DNA of 64,000 bases from positions 124,001-188,000 of IMG/VR virus record IMGVR_UViG_3300027896_005002. One strand, given 5' to 3'. Below the pieces are notes generated by a model that saw only the letters and a list, made by a program, of their open reading frames with translations, was not told the origin of the DNA and ran no database searches. A program made the position numbers and the translations under genes. This document shows positions 20,858 to 30,233 of this stretch, piece by piece. Position 1 is the first letter of the stretch. Each line of letters begins with the position of its first letter.

Positions 20858-21391
20858 ATGAAGTTCAAAGACATCAAACAATTCCCTCAAATCTACTACA
20901 ATGTCAACCTCTCATGGTCATCTCTTGACGACTGGCTTGCTCGTCAAATGAATATCGGTGAATACAAAAGTCAGAGAGAAGGCCTCTCCTCTCTCAACAT
21001 CAATCCTGACTTTCAACGCGGCCACGTCTGGACTAAAGACCAACAAATCGCCTACGTCGAATTCATGCTTTGCGGCGGCACTTCCGGTCGCAATATCTAC
21101 TTCAACCATCCAGGATGGATGTCATCCTTCAAAGGTGAATTCGTCCTTGTTGACGGTCTCCAACGCATTACTGCAGTCCAAGCTTTCATGCACAATAAAA
21201 TCCCAGCCTTCGGCTCTCTTATTGAAGACTACGAAGATAAAATGCCATACAATGTTGATTTCATAGTTAATGTGGCCAAACTCCAAACACGAAAAGATGT
21301 CCTCAACTGGTACATACTCATGAACTCTGGCGGCACACCTCACACTCAAGAAGAAATTGACCGAGTCAAAACTCTCAAGGACCAACTATGA
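20858..21391 (+). CDS. stand-alone DUF262 (ParB-like/GmrSD N-terminal) protein
   Basis: INPDFQRGHVW, NIYF, LVDGLQRITA. Confidence 0.8.
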   Translation: MKFKDIKQFPQIYYNVNLSWSSLDDWLARQMNIGEYKSQREGLSSLNINPDFQRGHVWTKDQQIAYVEFMLCGGTSGRNIYFNHPGWMSSFKGEFVLVDGLQRITAVQAFMHNKIPAFGSLIEDYEDKMPYNVDFIVNVAKLQTRKDVLNWYILMNSGGTPHTQEEIDRVKTLKDQL

Positions 21392-22425: not shown

Positions 22426-22771
22426 ACTGCCAACAACTCTTACAACAAGTCGACTCACTCGGCAAAAAAGCCAAAACTCACTACCAATCACTACGTCAAA
22501 CACAAAACGTCAAAAACTCTGCCATACAAACTATCAATCTCTTTCAACAACCAACACGCCTCATCGTCTCTCCCCAAATCCTTAACCTCATTCGTCAACG
22601 TTCTGACGGAATCACACTCATCAAACTACCCAAAACATCTAAATACGATCACATCTCAAAAATTCAATTCCACAAAAACTACCACTCACTCAATTCATCC
22701 CAAAAAAGACAAATCCGTCAACTTTATAAAGAATCTGAACGTGAATGGAAAGCCGAAAGCGAAGTATCATG

Positions 22772-23014
22772 AAATGCAATCGTTGCGGCGGTTGCTGTCT
22801 TGCCAGCCCTTGCTTTGAAATTCCTTTTGACAAAGAAATATTCATTGAAATCAATGGTCTCAAAATTCATAAATGTCCTCACCTATCTTTCAACAACAAC
22901 ATCGCTACTTGCAATGTCTTCAAATCAGGCAATATCCACAAAAACTCTAATTGCACTTCTAACCACCCTCCAGAATTCTATAAAAAATATCTAAACTCCA
23001 AAAACCTCATATAA
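22772..23014 (+). CDS. small Cys-cluster (YkgJ-like) protein
   Basis: MKCNRCGGCC...C...CPHL...C; similar to 42611..42820. Confidence 0.55.
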   Translation, partial: KCNRCGGCCLASPCFEIPFDKEIFIEINGLKIHKCPHLSFNNNIATCNVFKSGNIHKNSNCTSNHPPEFYKKYLNSKNLI

Positions 23015-23767
23015 TTTTTTTCTCGCCTCAAAATGTGGCAGTTATCTCATTATCATAGATTTCTTCTTTTCATCAATCATCACACTACCGTTATATACGT
23101 CACATATTACTACTTGTAAACAACCTCAATAATCTTCTATCATCACTTCCCATCACTCTATTACACAATAATCATTATCAGTCGTCATATCGCGTATGAA
23201 GGCTGCTGACATTCATCATCTCTCTTCAGTGTTTCCTCTGGTATATAGCTATTTTCCCAAATGGCCTTTACTTTCTTCAATTTCGTCTCTATCTCTCAAT
23301 CGACGGAGATAAATTAACATTATTCTCTGTAAACTTACTTAAAAAGCATTCAAAACATCATCATCAACTTACGTGAAATATCCTCTAAAATACTAAGGCC
23401 CTCTCTTCTCAACAAATATTACCCTCTGTAAACATACAGATTATATTTCATATACCTTAAATCAGTGGGCGATAGAATAGATTTTAGTAAGTTAAAATAT
23501 ACCATACGCGCGCGCAATATCAATTAATTATAGAGAGAAGGGTTTGACGCTTTTTATCTTGTAAATACACGTAATTGCACTAGCTACGTTGCCATAAGTA
23601 AATTTACAAGAGATACCTACCCGGAGCAGATGCCGCGTTGCGTCGGGTGCCGGAGAAGTCTTGCGAGAGCCTATCGCGTTGGCCCCTACCACAACAAACC
23701 ACAATAAATGAATGGTATAGATAAAGGGTCAGTAGAAGGTCTATATATGTAGGTATGTCACTAAGAG

Positions 23768-23802
23768 AATCGTGAGGCTTGTGACAGTATCTATATTTTT
23801 AG
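23768..23802 (+). repeat. direct repeat copy 1 flanking the helicase-MTase-rSAM operon
   Basis: AATCGTGAGGCTTGTGA exact 17-mer, then cAGTatcTATATTTTTAG. Confidence 0.8.
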
Positions 23803-24711
23803 ATACTTTTCTTTACTAGACAAGACTTTACATTCACAAAGTTCTGGATAGGGACAAATTTGTGGTTGTTTTAATAAATTTCCTAAATCAAAATCTTTTA
23901 CAATGAACTTACCTGTTCTAATTTGATTCCAGCATGTTACAATTTTATGTTTGCCGAAATCTTTATTATTATCACATGAAACAATAAAAAAATTACATCC
24001 AGCATTACAATTTTCACCTTTACGAATTTTTGGAATATCTTCTTCAATGGGAAATTTAGTTTTTATAAAATCCGGGCATAAATTGAAAAGATTGTTATAT
24101 TTTAATAAGTAGTCATTTTGATATGATCCGTCGGCGTTAATTACAGTCTTACACATACGTCCTTTTATACATCGTGGTATTATAAAAATGTCATGTTTAG
24201 AAAGAATATCAAATACTTCGTGATAAACATCTAAATTTGTTCGACCTATTATTAATGTTTGGCCATTTAATAAAATGGGTGTGATAATTTGAGTAACATT
24301 AATATTGACATTTCTAGATTTAAATTGCTTTATATTATTAATAAATTTATCTAAAAATTTTGATAATTCTTCATGAGTATTAATGTTCCGACATTCAAGA
24401 TGTAATGACACATAAAGATTGCCATTTTTAATTTCATCATAATTATAACTTTGTTCACTGAGTTTAGTATTAATTATATAGTTATAACCACATTGTTGAA
24501 TATATTCAATTATTTTATAAATGTTAACGTTATCAAAGGGTTCTCCGCCTGAGATTATAATAAGACTTGATTGAGGTAAATTTTTAAAAAATTTCATATT
24601 TTTGATATCAATATCACTGTATTGAAATTGATGTACATTGTCATTTACACAGTAATAGCATCTTGGTTGACAATTATTTCCCATTATATTTAGTTCAACT
24701 ACAATATTCAT
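23791..24711 (-). CDS. radical SAM protein with Cys-rich C-terminus (track ORF to 24837; probable start 24711)
   Basis: CQPRCYYC (CxxxCxxC), ISGGEPF, C-terminal CNAG...C...CPYPELCEC (Twitch/SPASM-like). Confidence 0.85.
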   Translation of the reverse strand: MNIVVELNIMGNNCQPRCYYCVNDNVHQFQYSDIDIKNMKFFKNLPQSSLIIISGGEPFDNVNIYKIIEYIQQCGYNYIINTKLSEQSYNYDEIKNGNLYVSLHLECRNINTHEELSKFLDKFINNIKQFKSRNVNINVTQIITPILLNGQTLIIGRTNLDVYHEVFDILSKHDIFIIPRCIKGRMCKTVINADGSYQNDYLLKYNNLFNLCPDFIKTKFPIEEDIPKIRKGENCNAGCNFFIVSCDNNKDFGKHKIVTCWNQIRTGKFIVKDFDLGNLLKQPQICPYPELCECKVLSSKEKYLKI

Positions 24712-24712
24712 A

Positions 24713-25315
24713 CTATCTTTTATAGAGGATGATTGTTCCAAGTATTGATTTGCTTTTATTGCCAGTGCCGTTATACATATAGATATTGTTGTTTGTTTGC
24801 CAATTATTTTCATGAATGTATCTGCAGAATCGTTCATTTGAGTTTATTGTTTTTTGTATTTCATCGTGTCGGCAGCATTGATGTCTGTTTTTTAAGATGA
24901 TGTTGATAGCGATCATTACTTCGTTTATTTGTCTGCGATTGAGAATTTTTAGTATTTCTGTTGTGAGGTTAATTGCTTTTTCTGGCATGTATAATGTGTC
25001 CAGGTTGACAATGCCGGGATTGAATGGTCTTTTAAAGATGTATTGTATGTGACCGCAAAACCAATTGCAGTTAGGTAATTTGTTTTTGTTAATGTTAATA
25101 GTTGTTGAATCGTAGTCAATGCCGAAATATTGTTTTTGAGTAATGAGGCCTGATTTGAAAAGTTGGTCAGTTTCGCAGTTTTCACCGATTTGTGGAGAGC
25201 ATAGAGAAATGAATGATTTGTTTTTGGGCATTGTGTGGTAGAATAGTTCTCGATAAGTGTTTATGATGATTTCTCGAGATTTAGTTTTTTTGGTGTCGTT
25301 AGAATATAATTTCAT
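24713..25315 (-). CDS. divergent class I SAM-dependent methyltransferase-like protein
   Basis: Order FISLCS (motif I-like), YFGIDYD (acidic end of beta2), NWFCGHI, GIVNLD (motif IV-like); glycine loop degenerate. Confidence 0.45.
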   Translation of the reverse strand: MKLYSNDTKKTKSREIIINTYRELFYHTMPKNKSFISLCSPQIGENCETDQLFKSGLITQKQYFGIDYDSTTININKNKLPNCNWFCGHIQYIFKRPFNPGIVNLDTLYMPEKAINLTTEILKILNRRQINEVMIAINIILKNRHQCCRHDEIQKTINSNERFCRYIHENNWQTNNNIYMYNGTGNKSKSILGTIILYKR

Positions 25316-28246
25316 TTATCTTCCTTGATAACTTTTACCTAGAAACCATTTATACCCACCTTTTTTCTTAAAATCTTTATATTTACCGAGTGCTCCTCTT
25401 AAATGACAGGATATTTTTCTGTTTTTGGGATTTTTCCACCATTTAATATATTCTGTATTACTTGAAAGATTTAATTTACTAATTATTCTTTGAGCCTTAT
25501 CAGTTGACCATAAATCAGAAGAAATTGTTATAAATGACACTTTTGTTTTTGAAAATTGTTTGCCGAAGAACCATTTATACCCACCTTTTTTCTTAAAATC
25601 TTTATATCTCCAAACATTAAGCAATAAATGACATGTAATTTTTCTGTTTTTGGGATTTTTCCACCATTTAACATATTCAGGATTATTTTTGAATCCTAAT
25701 TTGCTGACTACTTTTTGAGCTTTATCTAATAGCCACAAATCAGAAGTAAGATTTCTTAAAGTTTTTTTTGTTCGTTTTTTTAATATTCGTATATTGAATT
25801 GTTTGCCGAAGAACCATTTATAGCCGCCTTTTTTCTCAAAATCTTTATATCTGTGAACACGGGAGTATAAATGACATGTAATTTTTCTGTTCTTGGGATT
25901 TTTCCACCATTTAAGATATTCATAAGGATTAAAAAACTTAAATGGTCTAATTACTTTTTGAGCTTTATCTAAAGACCACAAATCAGTATAACTTTTACCG
26001 AAGAACCATTTATAGCCACCTTTTTTTTCAAAATCTTTATATCTATATACATGACTATGTAAAAGTTGTGAGATATCTTTATTTTTAGGATTTTTCCACC
26101 ATTTAACATATTCAGGATTATTTTTGAATCCTAATTTACTAATTACTTTTTGAGCTTTATCTAAAGACCACAAATCAGTATAACTTTTACCGAAGAACCA
26201 TTTGTAGCCACCTTTTTTTTCAAAATCTTTATATCTATGAGGTCGACTATGTAAATGTGATGATATTTCTTTATTTTTAGGATGTCTCCACCATTTAGCA
26301 TATTCATGATTATTTTTGAAACCCAGTTTACTGACTATTTTTTGAGCTTTATCAATTGGCCATATATCGCCATAAAGTCTTTCAACGCATTCTTTAAATT
26401 TTTGTAATGTTTCAAATGTTTCAAAAGCATTCATTGCGCTTAAGTAAATAAATGCCGGATTTTCTCTTACAATACCTCTATTTAATTTATTAATATCAAA
26501 TGTTATAAAGTCTTCTTTTGCTCTTTTCCATAATTTTGTTATAATTTGTTTTGTAAATACTGTAACATCAATATTTGTAAGATGATTATTTTCAATTTCT
26601 TCTTGAATTATTTCAGTCGTTATTTGTATTGATTGATTTTTAACTAATCGTCTATTTGTAATTAATTGTGGGTTTTCTGCAGTCCATATTTTCATTTCTT
26701 GAATGATATCATCATTAATATTATGAATTATATTTGCAGGCAATGTCTTATAATAATCTATATTATTAGATTCTTTATTTTTTTTTCTTTTAATTTTATC
26801 GTTTTTAACAGCTTTACACTGTGCATAAATATGTTCAAATTGCATTGAAAGTACTATAGAATTGTAATAATTTTCTTTTCGTTTTAATGATAATTCTTTA
26901 TCTAAATCTTCCATTGTATATGGTAAGATATGATATACAGTTGCATGATTTTTATTATTAGCTTTTCTTAATGCTCGACCCATTCTTTGTATGACATCTG
27001 TTATATTTTTCACTCCGGGTATTAATATTCTTGTTAAATATTTCCAATTAGCACCTTCTCTAAATGTTCTTAAAGCAACTACAAAATCTAACATTTCATT
27101 ATTATCACTATTATGAACTTTTTCAGTATAATCGTACTTTTCTTTTCTATCGGATTCAACTACTAATTCAATTCCTTTTAGCCATTTGCCATTTCTTTTA
27201 ATTCTTGTTAAAATACCATCATGTTCTATTTCGGGATTATCACTATTACTTATCATTTTAAAAATCATATTTACATCATTGTATTTACCAGTTGATTCTC
27301 TACTATTAACATCAGGTACATAAATCAATGATGGTTCCCACATTGAATCTCTATTAAGTATTACATTTGTTGCATCTTCATACGATCTTTCATATAATAC
27401 AAAATTGTAATCAAAATAATCAAAATTACAATCTCTTAAATGTTCGTCGTATGGATATTTAAATGTTGTTACTTTTTCCATATTTTCTTTAGATAGCAGT
27501 GACCATTTATCGCCTCTGAATGGTGTTGCTGATACTAATCCTAATTCATTATTTCTTTCAGGAAAAGAATGTACATCATGGACAATTTTTCCCATTTTAT
27601 TAAAAGTTATTAAATCTTCATTTTCATATTCTTCACATAATAAATGTTGAACTTCATCAATTGTGTAAAGTATGTATGTAAAAGCTTCAGGATTTAAATC
27701 ATAAGCTAGAACTAAAGTAGCATTACAGCATACTATTATTCTATCTAAAGGATCTTTATTTCTATAAGATGTAATTGCAGTTAATAATCTTTTAGCATTT
27801 GATAAATCTGATTTATCAATACCAATAATTTCAACATCCCAATTTATTTGAGATTTATCAGGTGCTATTATTTTCATGGGATTGAAACTTCGTGTAATTT
27901 GTCTTTGTGGTGTTGATATGATATTGAATAATTTTGGATTTTTTTGTAATTTTTTATAATTTAGAATAGCTATTTCAACAGCTTTTCCTGCGCCAGTTGG
28001 AGCATCAATTAAATAGTATTTTTTATTAAGTAATTTGTTGTAACAGTTTAATTGCCAAGGTTTTAATATAAGTGGTTGACCGGGTATTGATGGTTGAGGA
28101 ATTGAAATTGTTTTGTCAAAATCATCAATACAAAAAGATCTTTTAATTCGAACTCGATTACCGGGTTTTCCAAAAATTTGATTTTCATTACGCGAAATAC
28201 GATTACCGTCATCATCAAATAATGAATCAATGTCAATTTTATTCAT
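25316..28246 (-). CDS. SF2 helicase/ATPase with five C-terminal tandem repeats (integrase-repeat-unit-like)
   Basis: APTGAGK, DEVQH, SATP, QRMGRALR; repeats W..DKAQK...LGF....EY.KWW..PKN.......RYKDF.KKGGYKWFFGK. Confidence 0.85.
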   Translation of the reverse strand: MNKIDIDSLFDDDGNRISRNENQIFGKPGNRVRIKRSFCIDDFDKTISIPQPSIPGQPLILKPWQLNCYNKLLNKKYYLIDAPTGAGKAVEIAILNYKKLQKNPKLFNIISTPQRQITRSFNPMKIIAPDKSQINWDVEIIGIDKSDLSNAKRLLTAITSYRNKDPLDRIIVCCNATLVLAYDLNPEAFTYILYTIDEVQHLLCEEYENEDLITFNKMGKIVHDVHSFPERNNELGLVSATPFRGDKWSLLSKENMEKVTTFKYPYDEHLRDCNFDYFDYNFVLYERSYEDATNVILNRDSMWEPSLIYVPDVNSRESTGKYNDVNMIFKMISNSDNPEIEHDGILTRIKRNGKWLKGIELVVESDRKEKYDYTEKVHNSDNNEMLDFVVALRTFREGANWKYLTRILIPGVKNITDVIQRMGRALRKANNKNHATVYHILPYTMEDLDKELSLKRKENYYNSIVLSMQFEHIYAQCKAVKNDKIKRKKNKESNNIDYYKTLPANIIHNINDDIIQEMKIWTAENPQLITNRRLVKNQSIQITTEIIQEEIENNHLTNIDVTVFTKQIITKLWKRAKEDFITFDINKLNRGIVRENPAFIYLSAMNAFETFETLQKFKECVERLYGDIWPIDKAQKIVSKLGFKNNHEYAKWWRHPKNKEISSHLHSRPHRYKDFEKKGGYKWFFGKSYTDLWSLDKAQKVISKLGFKNNPEYVKWWKNPKNKDISQLLHSHVYRYKDFEKKGGYKWFFGKSYTDLWSLDKAQKVIRPFKFFNPYEYLKWWKNPKNRKITCHLYSRVHRYKDFEKKGGYKWFFGKQFNIRILKKRTKKTLRNLTSDLWLLDKAQKVVSKLGFKNNPEYVKWWKNPKNRKITCHLLLNVWRYKDFKKKGGYKWFFGKQFSKTKVSFITISSDLWSTDKAQRIISKLNLSSNTEYIKWWKNPKNRKISCHLRGALGKYKDFKKKGGYKWFLGKSYQGR
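25319..26370 (-). repeat. five coding tandem repeats (core 192 nt / 64 aa)
   Basis: First Trp codon of units 1-3 at 26362, 26170, 25978 (192-nt period); units 4-5 separated by longer linkers. Confidence 0.9.
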
Positions 28247-28294
28247 GTTATTATAATCACGTAGAAATACGTAGAATATGTGCTTGCTATGCTA

Positions 28295-28328
28295 AATCGT
28301 GAGGCTTGTGATAGTGATATATTTTTTA
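28295..28328 (+). repeat. direct repeat copy 2 flanking the helicase-MTase-rSAM operon
   Basis: AATCGTGAGGCTTGTGA exact 17-mer, then tAGTgaTATATTTTTTAG. Confidence 0.8.
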
Positions 28329-28871
28329 GTTAGGGTATTCTGAATCCGAAAGCTATGGAGTCGATACTTTTATTTTGTGGATATATTATTTATTATTGTT
28401 TTCCAGTTAATTTAGTGATGATCTGTGAATCTTTTAAGAAATATTCTTGATTAAGTTTTAGTATAGATTTTTTTGGATTAGGATGATGTAATGATATGCA
28501 TTTAGCTTTATATCCTTTTTTTTCAAATCCGGTTATTTTAAATTCTGCCATGCAATCGGAACAAGTTCCGACGACATCGCCTATTTCAAATCGGCGTTTT
28601 TTTATTTTTGCGTCTTTATTATTATTTATTAATTGAGCGAAAGTTTTAATGTAATCATATTTACTTAAAAGAGCTTTTTTTAGGTTACTTTTGATTATTC
28701 CGTATAGAAATTTTGCTTTTTTACCCTCATCTCCATCGTCACAGTGTCCACCATTAAAAATGCAATCGTAGTGGCCCTCGGCATACCAAGCTGTCCAATA
28801 TTTCATGTGGAGATCATTGGGATATTTTTTTTGATAATCCTGTTCGATTTTTTTTATGATGTCTGTTGATT

Positions 28872-29291
28872 TCATATTTTGAAGATTAGTTCTATTTGTG
28901 TTATGTCCGAGAGTTCGTAGTCCGAGTTTGGTTTTGGGTCGAGTAGAGATATATCTTTGTTGTTAGTGATTTCAAGTAAGACGCAGTGTGAGTAGTGTCT
29001 TGATGGTTTTTGTAGTATGCCGATGCATTTGAAGTTATTGAGGGAGAGGTAAGGCATTTTGACGCAGTTTTTATCAGGGATGAAGGGTGTGTCGATAGTG
29101 ATCCTGAAGTAGTTGTGGGAGTTGAGGAAGTTGTCGTAGGTGTTTTTGAAGGTCGTTATTTCTTCGTCAGACCAGGGTCTGTTTTTGTCTGGAGATATTT
29201 TGTGGAATTCAGGGATGTCCAAGTAGTTTATGTGTAGTAGTTCAGATAGGCAAGTTTGTAGGCAGTCTCTGTCGTGTCTTTGTTTATTCAT
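28872..29291 (-). CDS. papain-like (C39-like) peptidase-fold protein
   Basis: N-terminal DCLQTCLSELL, later HCVLL and LLDP (Cys-His-Asp order). Confidence 0.5.
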   Translation of the reverse strand: MNKQRHDRDCLQTCLSELLHINYLDIPEFHKISPDKNRPWSDEEITTFKNTYDNFLNSHNYFRITIDTPFIPDKNCVKMPYLSLNNFKCIGILQKPSRHYSHCVLLEITNNKDISLLDPKPNSDYELSDITQIELIFKI

Positions 29292-30198
29292 CGCTATTGT
29301 AGGTCTGTCATTTTATTATTATTTTTTATTCTGGGTAGTAATAGAAGTGATGGATCGTATTGTGGGAAAGTATGGAACGGTTTGCTGTCGTCTTCTTTGC
29401 CTGAGAATATTTTTTGAAATTTTTTATAGATAGTGTTGATTGTTTTGGCGTGTTTTGTGTTACAATTTTTTTTGTCGAGGTCTGCGATGTATGTTTGAAA
29501 TTTAGTGATGCGAAACGCAATACATTCAATGTATGCCATTGGTGTCATATTTCGAGTCTTCATGATAATTTTTGATAGAGAAGTTAGTGTTTCAGGATCG
29601 AGTATCCCTATTCTCTTGTCTCTCTTGAGTTTTTGTGTGATGAGCGTGCAGACGCCGAACATTGATAGTTCATGACATATGTCGTCAGCTTTTTCTAGTA
29701 GTTTGGGATTGAGTATGAGGGCTTCAATGTCTATTTTCTCTGCCGTCTTGGGATCAGTTCGGTATTTGAATTGTCGGATTTTGATGTCAGATGGTTTTGT
29801 ATTCATTCTTTTCTCCTATTAGAATTCTCATTCAGTTATTAGTTGCCATAATATGCATTCTTTTGTCCATGAAGGTACGATATAGTTCATTCCTAGTAAT
29901 TTTGCTAGGATAGTGTTGTCTTTATAAGGTTGTGTCGTATAGACATTAGTGCCGAACCATTGTTCAAGTTTTTTAATTTCTAGGTTTTGGAATGAAGTAA
30001 GTAATTTTTTTGCTTTAGTGATGAAGAATTTCTTAGCGTGTAAGGGATTTGAAGTAAAGATAGGGCAGTTTATATTGTTGTCCCATAAATTGCTTATCCA
30101 GTATTCTATTTTTTCTTCTTTTGGATAGATTGGTTTGGCTGCTAGATTGAATGTTATAAATTTTAGGCGGTATATCATGGTATTTAGTGAGTTGAGAT

Positions 30199-30223
30199 AA
30201 GGCCTCTTTATTAGAGAGGCCTT
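30199..30223 (-). terminator. hairpin downstream of the MVP-like gene
   Basis: AAGGCCTCT/AGAGGCCTT 9-bp stem. Confidence 0.6.
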
Positions 30224-30233
30224 TATAAAGAGT

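Follow-up and report, generated by a model that had tools for sequence, protein, structure and literature searches.

A phage helicase, repeat and methyltransferase-fold unit with an attached radical SAM gene in a strain-variable cassette of a huge phage

In the virus record IMGVR_UViG_3300027896_005002 of IMG/VR, three tightly coupled minus-strand genes encoding a helicase, a protein of 200 amino acids and a radical S-adenosylmethionine (SAM) protein are bracketed by two copies of a direct repeat, here called R, and the question arises of what these genes do together and how they came to lie between the repeats. The original prediction, made from the DNA alone, had seen in them an acquired or excisable module, perhaps a DNA modification or restriction-like system. 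Bases 124,001-188,000 of the single 416,029-bp contig (31% G+C) were analysed; this stretch of 64,000 nucleotides is the window, to which all positions refer unless the genome is named. The helicase gene (25316-28246, minus strand, 976 aa) is followed by the gene of the 200-aa protein (P0001; 24713-25315, minus strand), which is translationally coupled to it, and by the radical SAM gene (23791-24711, minus strand, 306 aa from the best start at 24711). The coupling is as tight as had been claimed: the stop codon TAA of the helicase (25316-25318) abuts the ATG of the 200-aa open reading frame (ORF) at 25315, closely upstream of which a Shine-Dalgarno-like run (AAGGAAGA) is found, and the stop codon TAG of the latter (24713-24715) is 1 nt away from the radical SAM ATG at 24711. 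What this locus revealed is an unannotated, widespread phage unit of helicase, repeats and methyltransferase-fold protein, to which an orphan radical SAM gene is attached here.

The unit became apparent from other loci that encode members of the 200-aa protein family, ten of which (L001, L006, L010, L011, L013 and L014-L018), out of about 600 members, were inspected. A helicase gene precedes the family gene in nine of the ten. In seven, the family gene is preceded on its own strand by a gene for a phmmer-detectable homologue of the window helicase, and the two genes usually abut or overlap; the repeat-bearing, INT_rpt-like C-terminus of such a helicase was found at the contig edge of L001, and a Helicase_C/DExH protein is encoded upstream in L015. 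Further, the modules occur fused in single polypeptides with the methyltransferase-fold domain at the C-terminus, following DEAD/ResIII and three HA repeats in P0088 and a helicase fragment and two HA repeats in P0122, and in P0095 this domain follows a helicase-like N-terminal part which bears a Walker A motif but has no Pfam match. Repeat arrays are located inside the helicase in the window, L001, L010, L011 and P0088, and on separate adjacent genes in L016 (INT_rpt, 29-33 bits), L018 (HA, 99 bits) and L015 (HA, 31.5 bits). Each of the three modules is present in a single copy in the genome studied here. Judged from these comparisons, the recurring unit consists of a helicase, a repeat array and a methyltransferase-fold protein, either as coupled genes or as one fused polypeptide. 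Besides, the genes of a Cys-rich 138-aa protein and of a 316-aa protein converge on the pair in L001 (1581-2963, minus strand), and the latter protein is patatin-like by eye, with G-G-x-K-G near its N-terminus and a G-T-S-T-G motif.

As a single sequence, the 200-aa protein had no match in Pfam, PHROGs, NCBIfam or PADLOC, and a word-indexed search with it returned one relative only (69% identical, encoded in L001). An exhaustive search with a three-sequence profile recovered 605 cluster representatives (E ≤ 1e-3; 471 at E ≤ 1e-10), and nearly all have a length of 200-240 aa. AlphaFold2, supplied with a 142-member alignment, gave a model of high confidence (predicted local distance difference test, pLDDT, 95.3; predicted template modelling score, pTM, 0.91) with the strand and helix order of class I SAM-methyltransferases, that is a seven-stranded sheet (3-2-1-4-5-7-6) with a C-terminal beta hairpin and flanking helices. 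Foldseek searches of PDB, AFDB and BFVD with this model found methyltransferases exclusively (probability 1.0, identity 8-17%), and the nearest ESM-Atlas cluster (template modelling, TM, score 0.76) has 483 members, 97% of which are viral. The three Pfam families that most family members match are all Methyltransf_* families. The structure prediction and the structure searches thus show a Rossmann/class I methyltransferase fold, and the earlier description of the ORF as methyltransferase-like was upheld in the model. Conserved in the family are D67 at the end of strand 2, which is invariant in the 12-sequence alignment A6, GD[F] after strand 3 in most members, and D106 at the end of strand 4, which is invariant in both family alignments, as well as R14, Y181 and a GTG turn. 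The protein consists of one domain, and a target-recognition domain is absent. A classical N6-adenine or N4-cytosine DNA methyltransferase was considered and excluded, since the protein is a single 200-aa domain with no PP[YFW]. The family is large, unnamed and mostly viral, and has neither a Pfam model nor an annotation.

The helicase has an N-terminal superfamily 2 (SF2) DExH ATPase core (26807-28246, minus strand; approximately aa 1-480 of 976), in which a Walker A motif PTGAGK, DEVQH, a SAT-like TATP and an arginine-finger motif QxxGRxxR are conserved, as is characteristic of SF2 DExH/ResIII proteins. Single-sequence scores against DEAD, ResIII and Helicase_C of Pfam were weak and below cut-off, and homologues are 24-33% identical; in the 12-sequence alignment of the helicase family K88, D197/E198, Q420, G423, R424 and R427 are conserved, and the helicase motifs are intact. 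A profile search of the PDB matched the RecA1/RecA2 domains of XPB, MDA5/RIG-I and Brr2, and also LlaBIII/LlaGI. The C-terminal part carries an array of five repeats of 64-75 aa (aa 626-973; 25328-26371, minus strand), visible in the DNA as five copies repeating every 192-243 nt and in the protein as five hidden Markov model (HMM) domains with E values of 1e-30 to 4e-33. PF14882 (INT_rpt) did not match the repeats in a direct hmmscan even at E 5, and the L016 locus carries INT_rpt above cut-off; aligned by hhalign, the repeats matched the INT_rpt units in an “integrase repeat-containing” helicase from Lentisphaera with 90% probability (E 1.6e-6), pointing to a relationship with INT_rpt. No similarity to HA repeats was detectable; therefore, two unrelated repeat types seem to fill one slot of the unit. 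The HA domain binds DNA according to a nuclear magnetic resonance (NMR) study (Mills et al. 2013, as cited in PMC12191111).

Searches for known defence systems gave only marginal similarities. In PADLOC, the motif V-VI region of the helicase (residues 371-449) matched PbeA with 34 bits and dnd_restrict_1 with 27.8 bits (cut-off 600), neither of the small genes matched anything, and no system of the set (PbeABCD, Dnd, DISARM, BREX and others) was recognised at the locus. There was no family-level match in PADLOC, Pfam or NCBIfam, which agrees with the view that the trio is not a described system; the “restriction-like” part of the original prediction was not supported: no nuclease domain was found. 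A tblastn search of phage records with the helicase hit just Tunturiibacter phage Tunturi_5 and one Ralstonia record, neither of which has the partner gene, and the more distant helicases of the same clade on a 201-kb Joint Genome Institute (JGI) contig, in Tunturi_5 and in Lentisphaera are likewise without a methyltransferase-fold partner.

Next to the composition of the unit stands the question of how it came to its place. The 17-mer AATCGTGAGGCTTGTGA, which had been reported to bracket the three genes, is indeed present as exact copies at 23768-23784 and 28295-28311, and the similarity extends, with two 1-nt gaps, over 23768-23805 and 28295-28332 (34 of 39 columns identical). No further copy with up to three mismatches was found in the window or in the whole contig. 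For a G+C-rich 17-mer in a genome of the same size with 31% G+C, about 1e-5 chance copies are expected from base composition; a chance origin was rejected on this expectation, and the two copies therefore share descent. Copy 1 (23768-23805) overlaps the last codons and the stop codon of the radical SAM gene, and copy 2 (28295-28332) lies in the 146-nt spacer between the helicase start and an upstream gene of 160 aa (28393-28875), 49 nt upstream of the helicase ATG. Between copy 2 and the ATG lies a leader of 48 nt (28247-28294, minus strand) which occurs once in the genome.

The locus differs between strains. L028, a contig of 17.8 kb obtained from a different metagenome, matches window positions 29815-28244 with 98.7% identity. 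In it the spacer, a single R with 2 mismatches and the leader as far as the helicase ATG are retained; the last 33 nt up to and including the ATG contain 1 mismatch and are followed by complete divergence, which places the strain breakpoint at the end of the leader (approximately 28244). From the ATG on, the helicase is replaced by a gene of a multi-copy family (N-terminus MKHLA..SEFIK...), and the contig stops 0.5 kb past the breakpoint, short of the right-hand junction. In L029, which encodes a 79%-identical relative of the upstream gene, unrelated genes occupy the cassette position. At 29816-30233, a 116-aa ORF (29828-30178) preceded by a strong terminator-like hairpin is absent from L028 (93-99% identical), and a 12-nt direct repeat (ACAAAACCATCT) was observed near both borders. 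The cassette is thus a strain-variable, acquired-type segment in a plastic region, and the site is a hot spot of cassette replacement, because L028 and L029 carry other genes there and L028 lacks the 116-aa ORF. Of the proposed “acquired or excisable” module, the acquired part is borne out by these two relatives; excision found no support, as no joint between the R copies was seen in contigs of the source metagenome and sequencing depth was even (approximately 22), although contigs cannot exclude rare circles or forms. An integrase acting on R as attachment site was considered and rejected, there being no recombinase gene in or beside the cassette.

R is best read as a junction that was duplicated when recombination brought the cassette to its site. 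Alternatively, it could be a functional regulatory site, that is a promoter, an operator or a processing site before two transcription units, in which case it would not be a recombination scar. The location of copy 2 at 49 nt from the helicase ATG, the retention of R before a different gene in L028, and the precedent of regulatory cassettes in T4-type phages which also mediate shuffling (PeSLs; PMC2839356) would fit such a role, but R has just two copies in 416 kb, no sigma-70-like or otherwise promoter-like hexamers were found at R, and no stem-loop was found in the part common to both copies. As RNA, copy 2 is unstructured (0 kcal/mol), and an 8-bp A/U hairpin across the stop codon adjoins copy 1 only. 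Furthermore, neither an ORF nor a structured RNA follows copy 1: the 753-bp gap between the cassette and the convergent plus-strand gene at 22745-23014 (23015-23767) is without a credible ORF (the sole ORF has 58 aa) and without an Rfam match, and RNA folding of the stretch 23480-23770 revealed no excess of structure (z +0.6). We regard a regulatory R as possible, but not as probable. The same gap holds, at 23049-23085, a 37-bp exact inverted copy of positions 2845-2881, the 5' coding part of the ORF 2491-2901, which is probably a gene remnant.

The reading that we favour, with a probability slightly above one half (about 0.55), is that of a strain-variable cassette in which a phage helicase or translocase and its repeats deliver a methyltransferase-fold protein to nucleic acid. 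The catalytic activity, the substrate and the biological purpose that we infer for the unit are as follows. The SF2 helicase would use ATP to load on nucleic acid which the repeat array holds, or to track along it; the tandem small repeats, INT_rpt-like here and HA in relatives, are probably nucleic-acid-binding, and DNA would be the more likely substrate. The helicase would thereby bring the small methyltransferase-fold subunit, itself devoid of a target-recognition domain, to the substrate for SAM-dependent modification, and a plausible purpose would be the marking or protection of phage nucleic acid during infection.

Several observations weigh against this reading. The 200-aa protein has no GxGxG loop after strand 1 but C-S/G-P instead, H89 replaces the motif-III Asp of the family in the window copy and in its closest relative, and a [DNS]PP[YFW] motif is absent, the family consensus after strand 4 being N-x-D-x-x-x-M-(P). 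SAM binding and methyltransferase catalysis by this protein are putative. In L017, an unclassified 557-aa protein and no recognisable helicase is encoded upstream of the family gene, and when helicase residues 1-760 and the 200-aa protein were modelled as a complex the score was 0.00, which speaks neither for nor against binding. Finally, the contig of the alternative strain ends before the right-hand junction is reached, and R is a candidate for a role in cassette exchange. The structures nearest to the model are those of RNA methyltransferases, and RNA is therefore a serious alternative substrate: the helicase might present tRNA, rRNA or mRNA of phage or host to a small RNA methyltransferase. 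We regard this version of the pair as possible, although not probable.

The same peculiarities of the sequence could mean that the methyltransferase-fold protein is catalytically dead and either has a structural or regulatory role as a helicase subunit or senses SAM. The missing canonical glycine-rich motif I, H89 at the motif-III position in the window copy and the failure of every Pfam methyltransferase model to attain its cut-off with this family are all in line with such a loss, but D67, D106 and, in most members, GD, which are SAM-pocket positions, are conserved across approximately 140 diverse members. This conservation argues against an inert scaffold, which would not need these residues, and makes a dead enzyme unlikely.

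How does the third gene fit to a helicase unit of the favoured kind? The start at 24711 puts a CX3CX2C motif at residues 14-21 (C14-x3-C18-x2-C21) of the radical SAM protein; a GGEP motif is present, and the C-terminus is Cys-rich and twitch/SPASM-like. Radical_SAM (PF04055) matched with 2e-6 and 28.5 bits in hmmscan (cut-off 29.5) and with 31.2 bits, above this cut-off, in a search of the genome, in agreement with membership of the superfamily. Fer4_12 matched with 7.8e-6 (26.7 bits, cut-off 22), and weak NCBIfam matches were to the SPASM-type enzymes NirJ2, AhbD and ScmE (E 2e-5 to 1e-4). A full-length paralogue with 24-27% identity is encoded at 66.5-67.3 kb of the genome, and both paralogues carry the C-terminal pattern CxAG...CW...ICPY.C.C which is typical of twitch/SPASM auxiliary-cluster domains. 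Apart from the protein itself, no homologue was found at E ≤ 1e-3 in a word-indexed search of 5.8 billion clusters, nor was there a match in 50,697 phage records. An AlphaFold2 model based on a two-sequence alignment was unusable (pLDDT 35). Altogether, six PF04055 matches, five of them over cut-off, are present in the genome, at 42.8, 63.9, 66.9, 148.3, 194.0 and 304.0 kb (L021-L026); two are at most 3 kb apart at 64-67 kb, and the radical SAM complement is unusually rich.

Base composition bears on the history of the three genes. The G+C content at third codon positions (GC3) is approximately 0.12-0.24 genome-wide and 0.3-0.5, nearly all of it C on the coding strand, in a block at approximately 120-160 kb of the genome (window about -2 to 38 kb; also placed at about 121.7-162 kb); this signature holds for genes of both orientations. 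The original prediction had described the outer genes as AT-rich and the middle one as different, and this stands, but the outer genes are those that resemble the genome: GC3 is 0.04-0.3, mostly about 0.1-0.2, in the helicase gene and 0.12-0.24 in the radical SAM gene, both as in most of the genome. In the 200-aa gene, GC3 is 0.32-0.44, nearly all C, with 14-19 C-ending codons per 50, which is the signature of the block of approximately 40 kb, and the composition switches sharply at both of its borders. Since this gene alone shows the block signature, and its closest relative, the L001 homologue, has no bias towards C-ending codons, the cassette is a compositional mosaic. The mosaic supports a different history of the parts, as the suspicion that they might differ in age had implied, and argues against acquisition of the three genes in one piece. 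The island itself may be due to foreign origin, expression-linked codon bias or chimeric assembly.

Within the favoured reading, the radical SAM/twitch-like gene would be a local add-on, a distant paralogue of another radical SAM gene of the genome, and from its distribution it is best read as a lineage-specific addition outside the conserved unit. Co-expression with the pair is likely because the genes are translationally coupled, and a shared pathway is not supported by the comparative evidence. A bolder version of the favoured reading, an undescribed but widespread phage machine which installs a modification processively while translocating, which recruited the radical SAM enzyme for a new hypermodification and which protects the phage genome from host defences or attacks nucleic acid of host or competitors, we consider improbable. 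Radical SAM enzymes are known from the thymidine-hypermodification clusters of phages. That the three genes together make up a single DNA-modification or restriction-like system with the radical SAM protein as obligatory partner, for example in building a hypermodified base, is the least probable explanation: translational coupling, the common use of SAM and the phage clusters just mentioned would favour it, but a CX3CX2C protein is encoded near the pair in none of the ten other loci, so that the trio of the original prediction does not recur as a unit, no homologue of the radical SAM protein was detected beyond this genome at E ≤ 1e-3, the codon composition of the methyltransferase-fold gene is sharply unlike that of both neighbours, no nuclease or base-modification genes adjoin, and the two small genes have no PADLOC counterpart.

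The element is located in a huge phage genome (at least 416 kb) from freshwater. This follows from the similarity of an 821-aa vault-like protein to proteins of huge phages, together with the phage-type ORFs of the contig, which encodes topoisomerase-like, ligase-like and very long tail-fibre-like proteins, and with its source, a freshwater metagenome. The record is linear with an estimated completeness of 77% (CheckV). The vault-like protein (30234-32699, minus strand) is unusual for phages; it has major-vault-protein domains (MVP_shoulder 7e-21, Vault_3 7e-10) and is 43-44% identical to proteins of LR756500/1/3, “uncultured phage” genomes of 462 and 735 kb. With LR756500/1 it is the sole gene in common; no synteny and no gene of the methyltransferase family was found in these relatives. 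Both contig ends (genome 1-200 and 415830-416029) lie within a very long ORF, in a short-period repeat of one kind (units resembling CCTGAATAACC...), and the assembly probably broke within this repeat. At least 24 different ORFs of the phage (for example at 371151, 288399, 217446 and 96900 of the genome), and one in L028 (8731-9108), share at the N-terminus a conserved module of approximately 45 aa (MKHLA.IQSEFIK.A..WDDL.L.EQK.YLKKH), which may serve as a signal for targeting or packaging. The plus-strand gene block which converges on the cassette includes, at 20858-21391, the gene of a 177-aa protein that has a GmrSD_N/DUF262 (ParB-like) domain (E 5.5e-11). A tRNA scan found no tRNA, and Rfam scans of the window and of 22900-28450 gave no match. 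There were also no matches in blastn and tblastn searches of a phage database with the region, the radical SAM protein and one member of the methyltransferase family, or in IMG/VR scans with the flanking proteins and a 27-mer beside repeat copy 1; exact-protein look-ups of the genes flanking the cassette returned none on record, one query being a residue short.

The significance of the locus lies in a family of about 600 representatives which is almost wholly viral and unannotated and nevertheless tightly linked to a helicase in phages of many environments. If the unit is an active methyltransferase delivered by a translocase, it would represent a new class of phage machinery for nucleic-acid modification or anti-defence, and the HA and INT_rpt repeats, which are poorly understood, would thereby gain a function. 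In addition, the locus documents cassette swapping in huge phages at strain resolution, and the direct repeat together with an exact breakpoint at a start codon offers a handle on the mechanism of swapping.

Compared with known systems, the radical SAM protein shares the N-terminal CX3CX2C, GGEP and CxAG...C...CPY.C.C with SPASM/twitch enzymes (AhbD, NirJ and anSME-type), but scores about 24 bits where the family cut-offs are 395-500, and has no evident substrate gene. The exchange of the cassette resembles the repeat-mediated modular shuffling by PeSLs in T4-type phages (Arbiol et al. 2010, PMC2839356; Comeau et al. 2014, PMC4122927), where a non-essential cassette in a plastic region likewise has short direct repeats and close strains differ by replacement. 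R itself, however, is not a PeSL as defined: PeSLs are multi-copy units of a promoter and a stem-loop terminator, whereas R is present in two copies without promoter-like hexamers or a common stem-loop, the contigs from the window's source contain no joint equivalent to PeSL mini-circles, and the strain breakpoint is at the helicase ATG, 49 nt from R and not within it. Bacterial helicases with INT_rpt (PF14882) or HA (PF03457) repeats likewise have an SF2 DEAD/ResIII core followed by tandem repeats of 55-65 aa, and the core of P0008 of Lentisphaera is 25% identical to that of the window helicase; unlike in the window, the bacterial L007 loci and the distant phage helicases (L003 and Tunturi_5, L019) have no methyltransferase-fold partner. 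Closest in design are DarB of phage P1 and the Type ISP enzymes LlaGI and LlaBIII, in which an SF2 ATPase or translocase is likewise joined, within one protein or operon, to a SAM-methyltransferase-fold module. DarB is a phage-encoded helicase-methyltransferase protein and in this respect like the unit described here, and chains of LlaBIII and LlaGI weakly match the profile of the window helicase (E 9e-5 and 3.6e-4). In comparison to these enzymes, the unit has no nuclease domain and no target-recognition domain, and its methyltransferase-fold protein of approximately 200 aa is without [DN]PP[YF] and without a sequence match to their methyltransferase domains. What the window unit and its relatives have instead, and DarB and the Type ISP enzymes do not, are the C-terminal arrays of HA or INT_rpt repeats.

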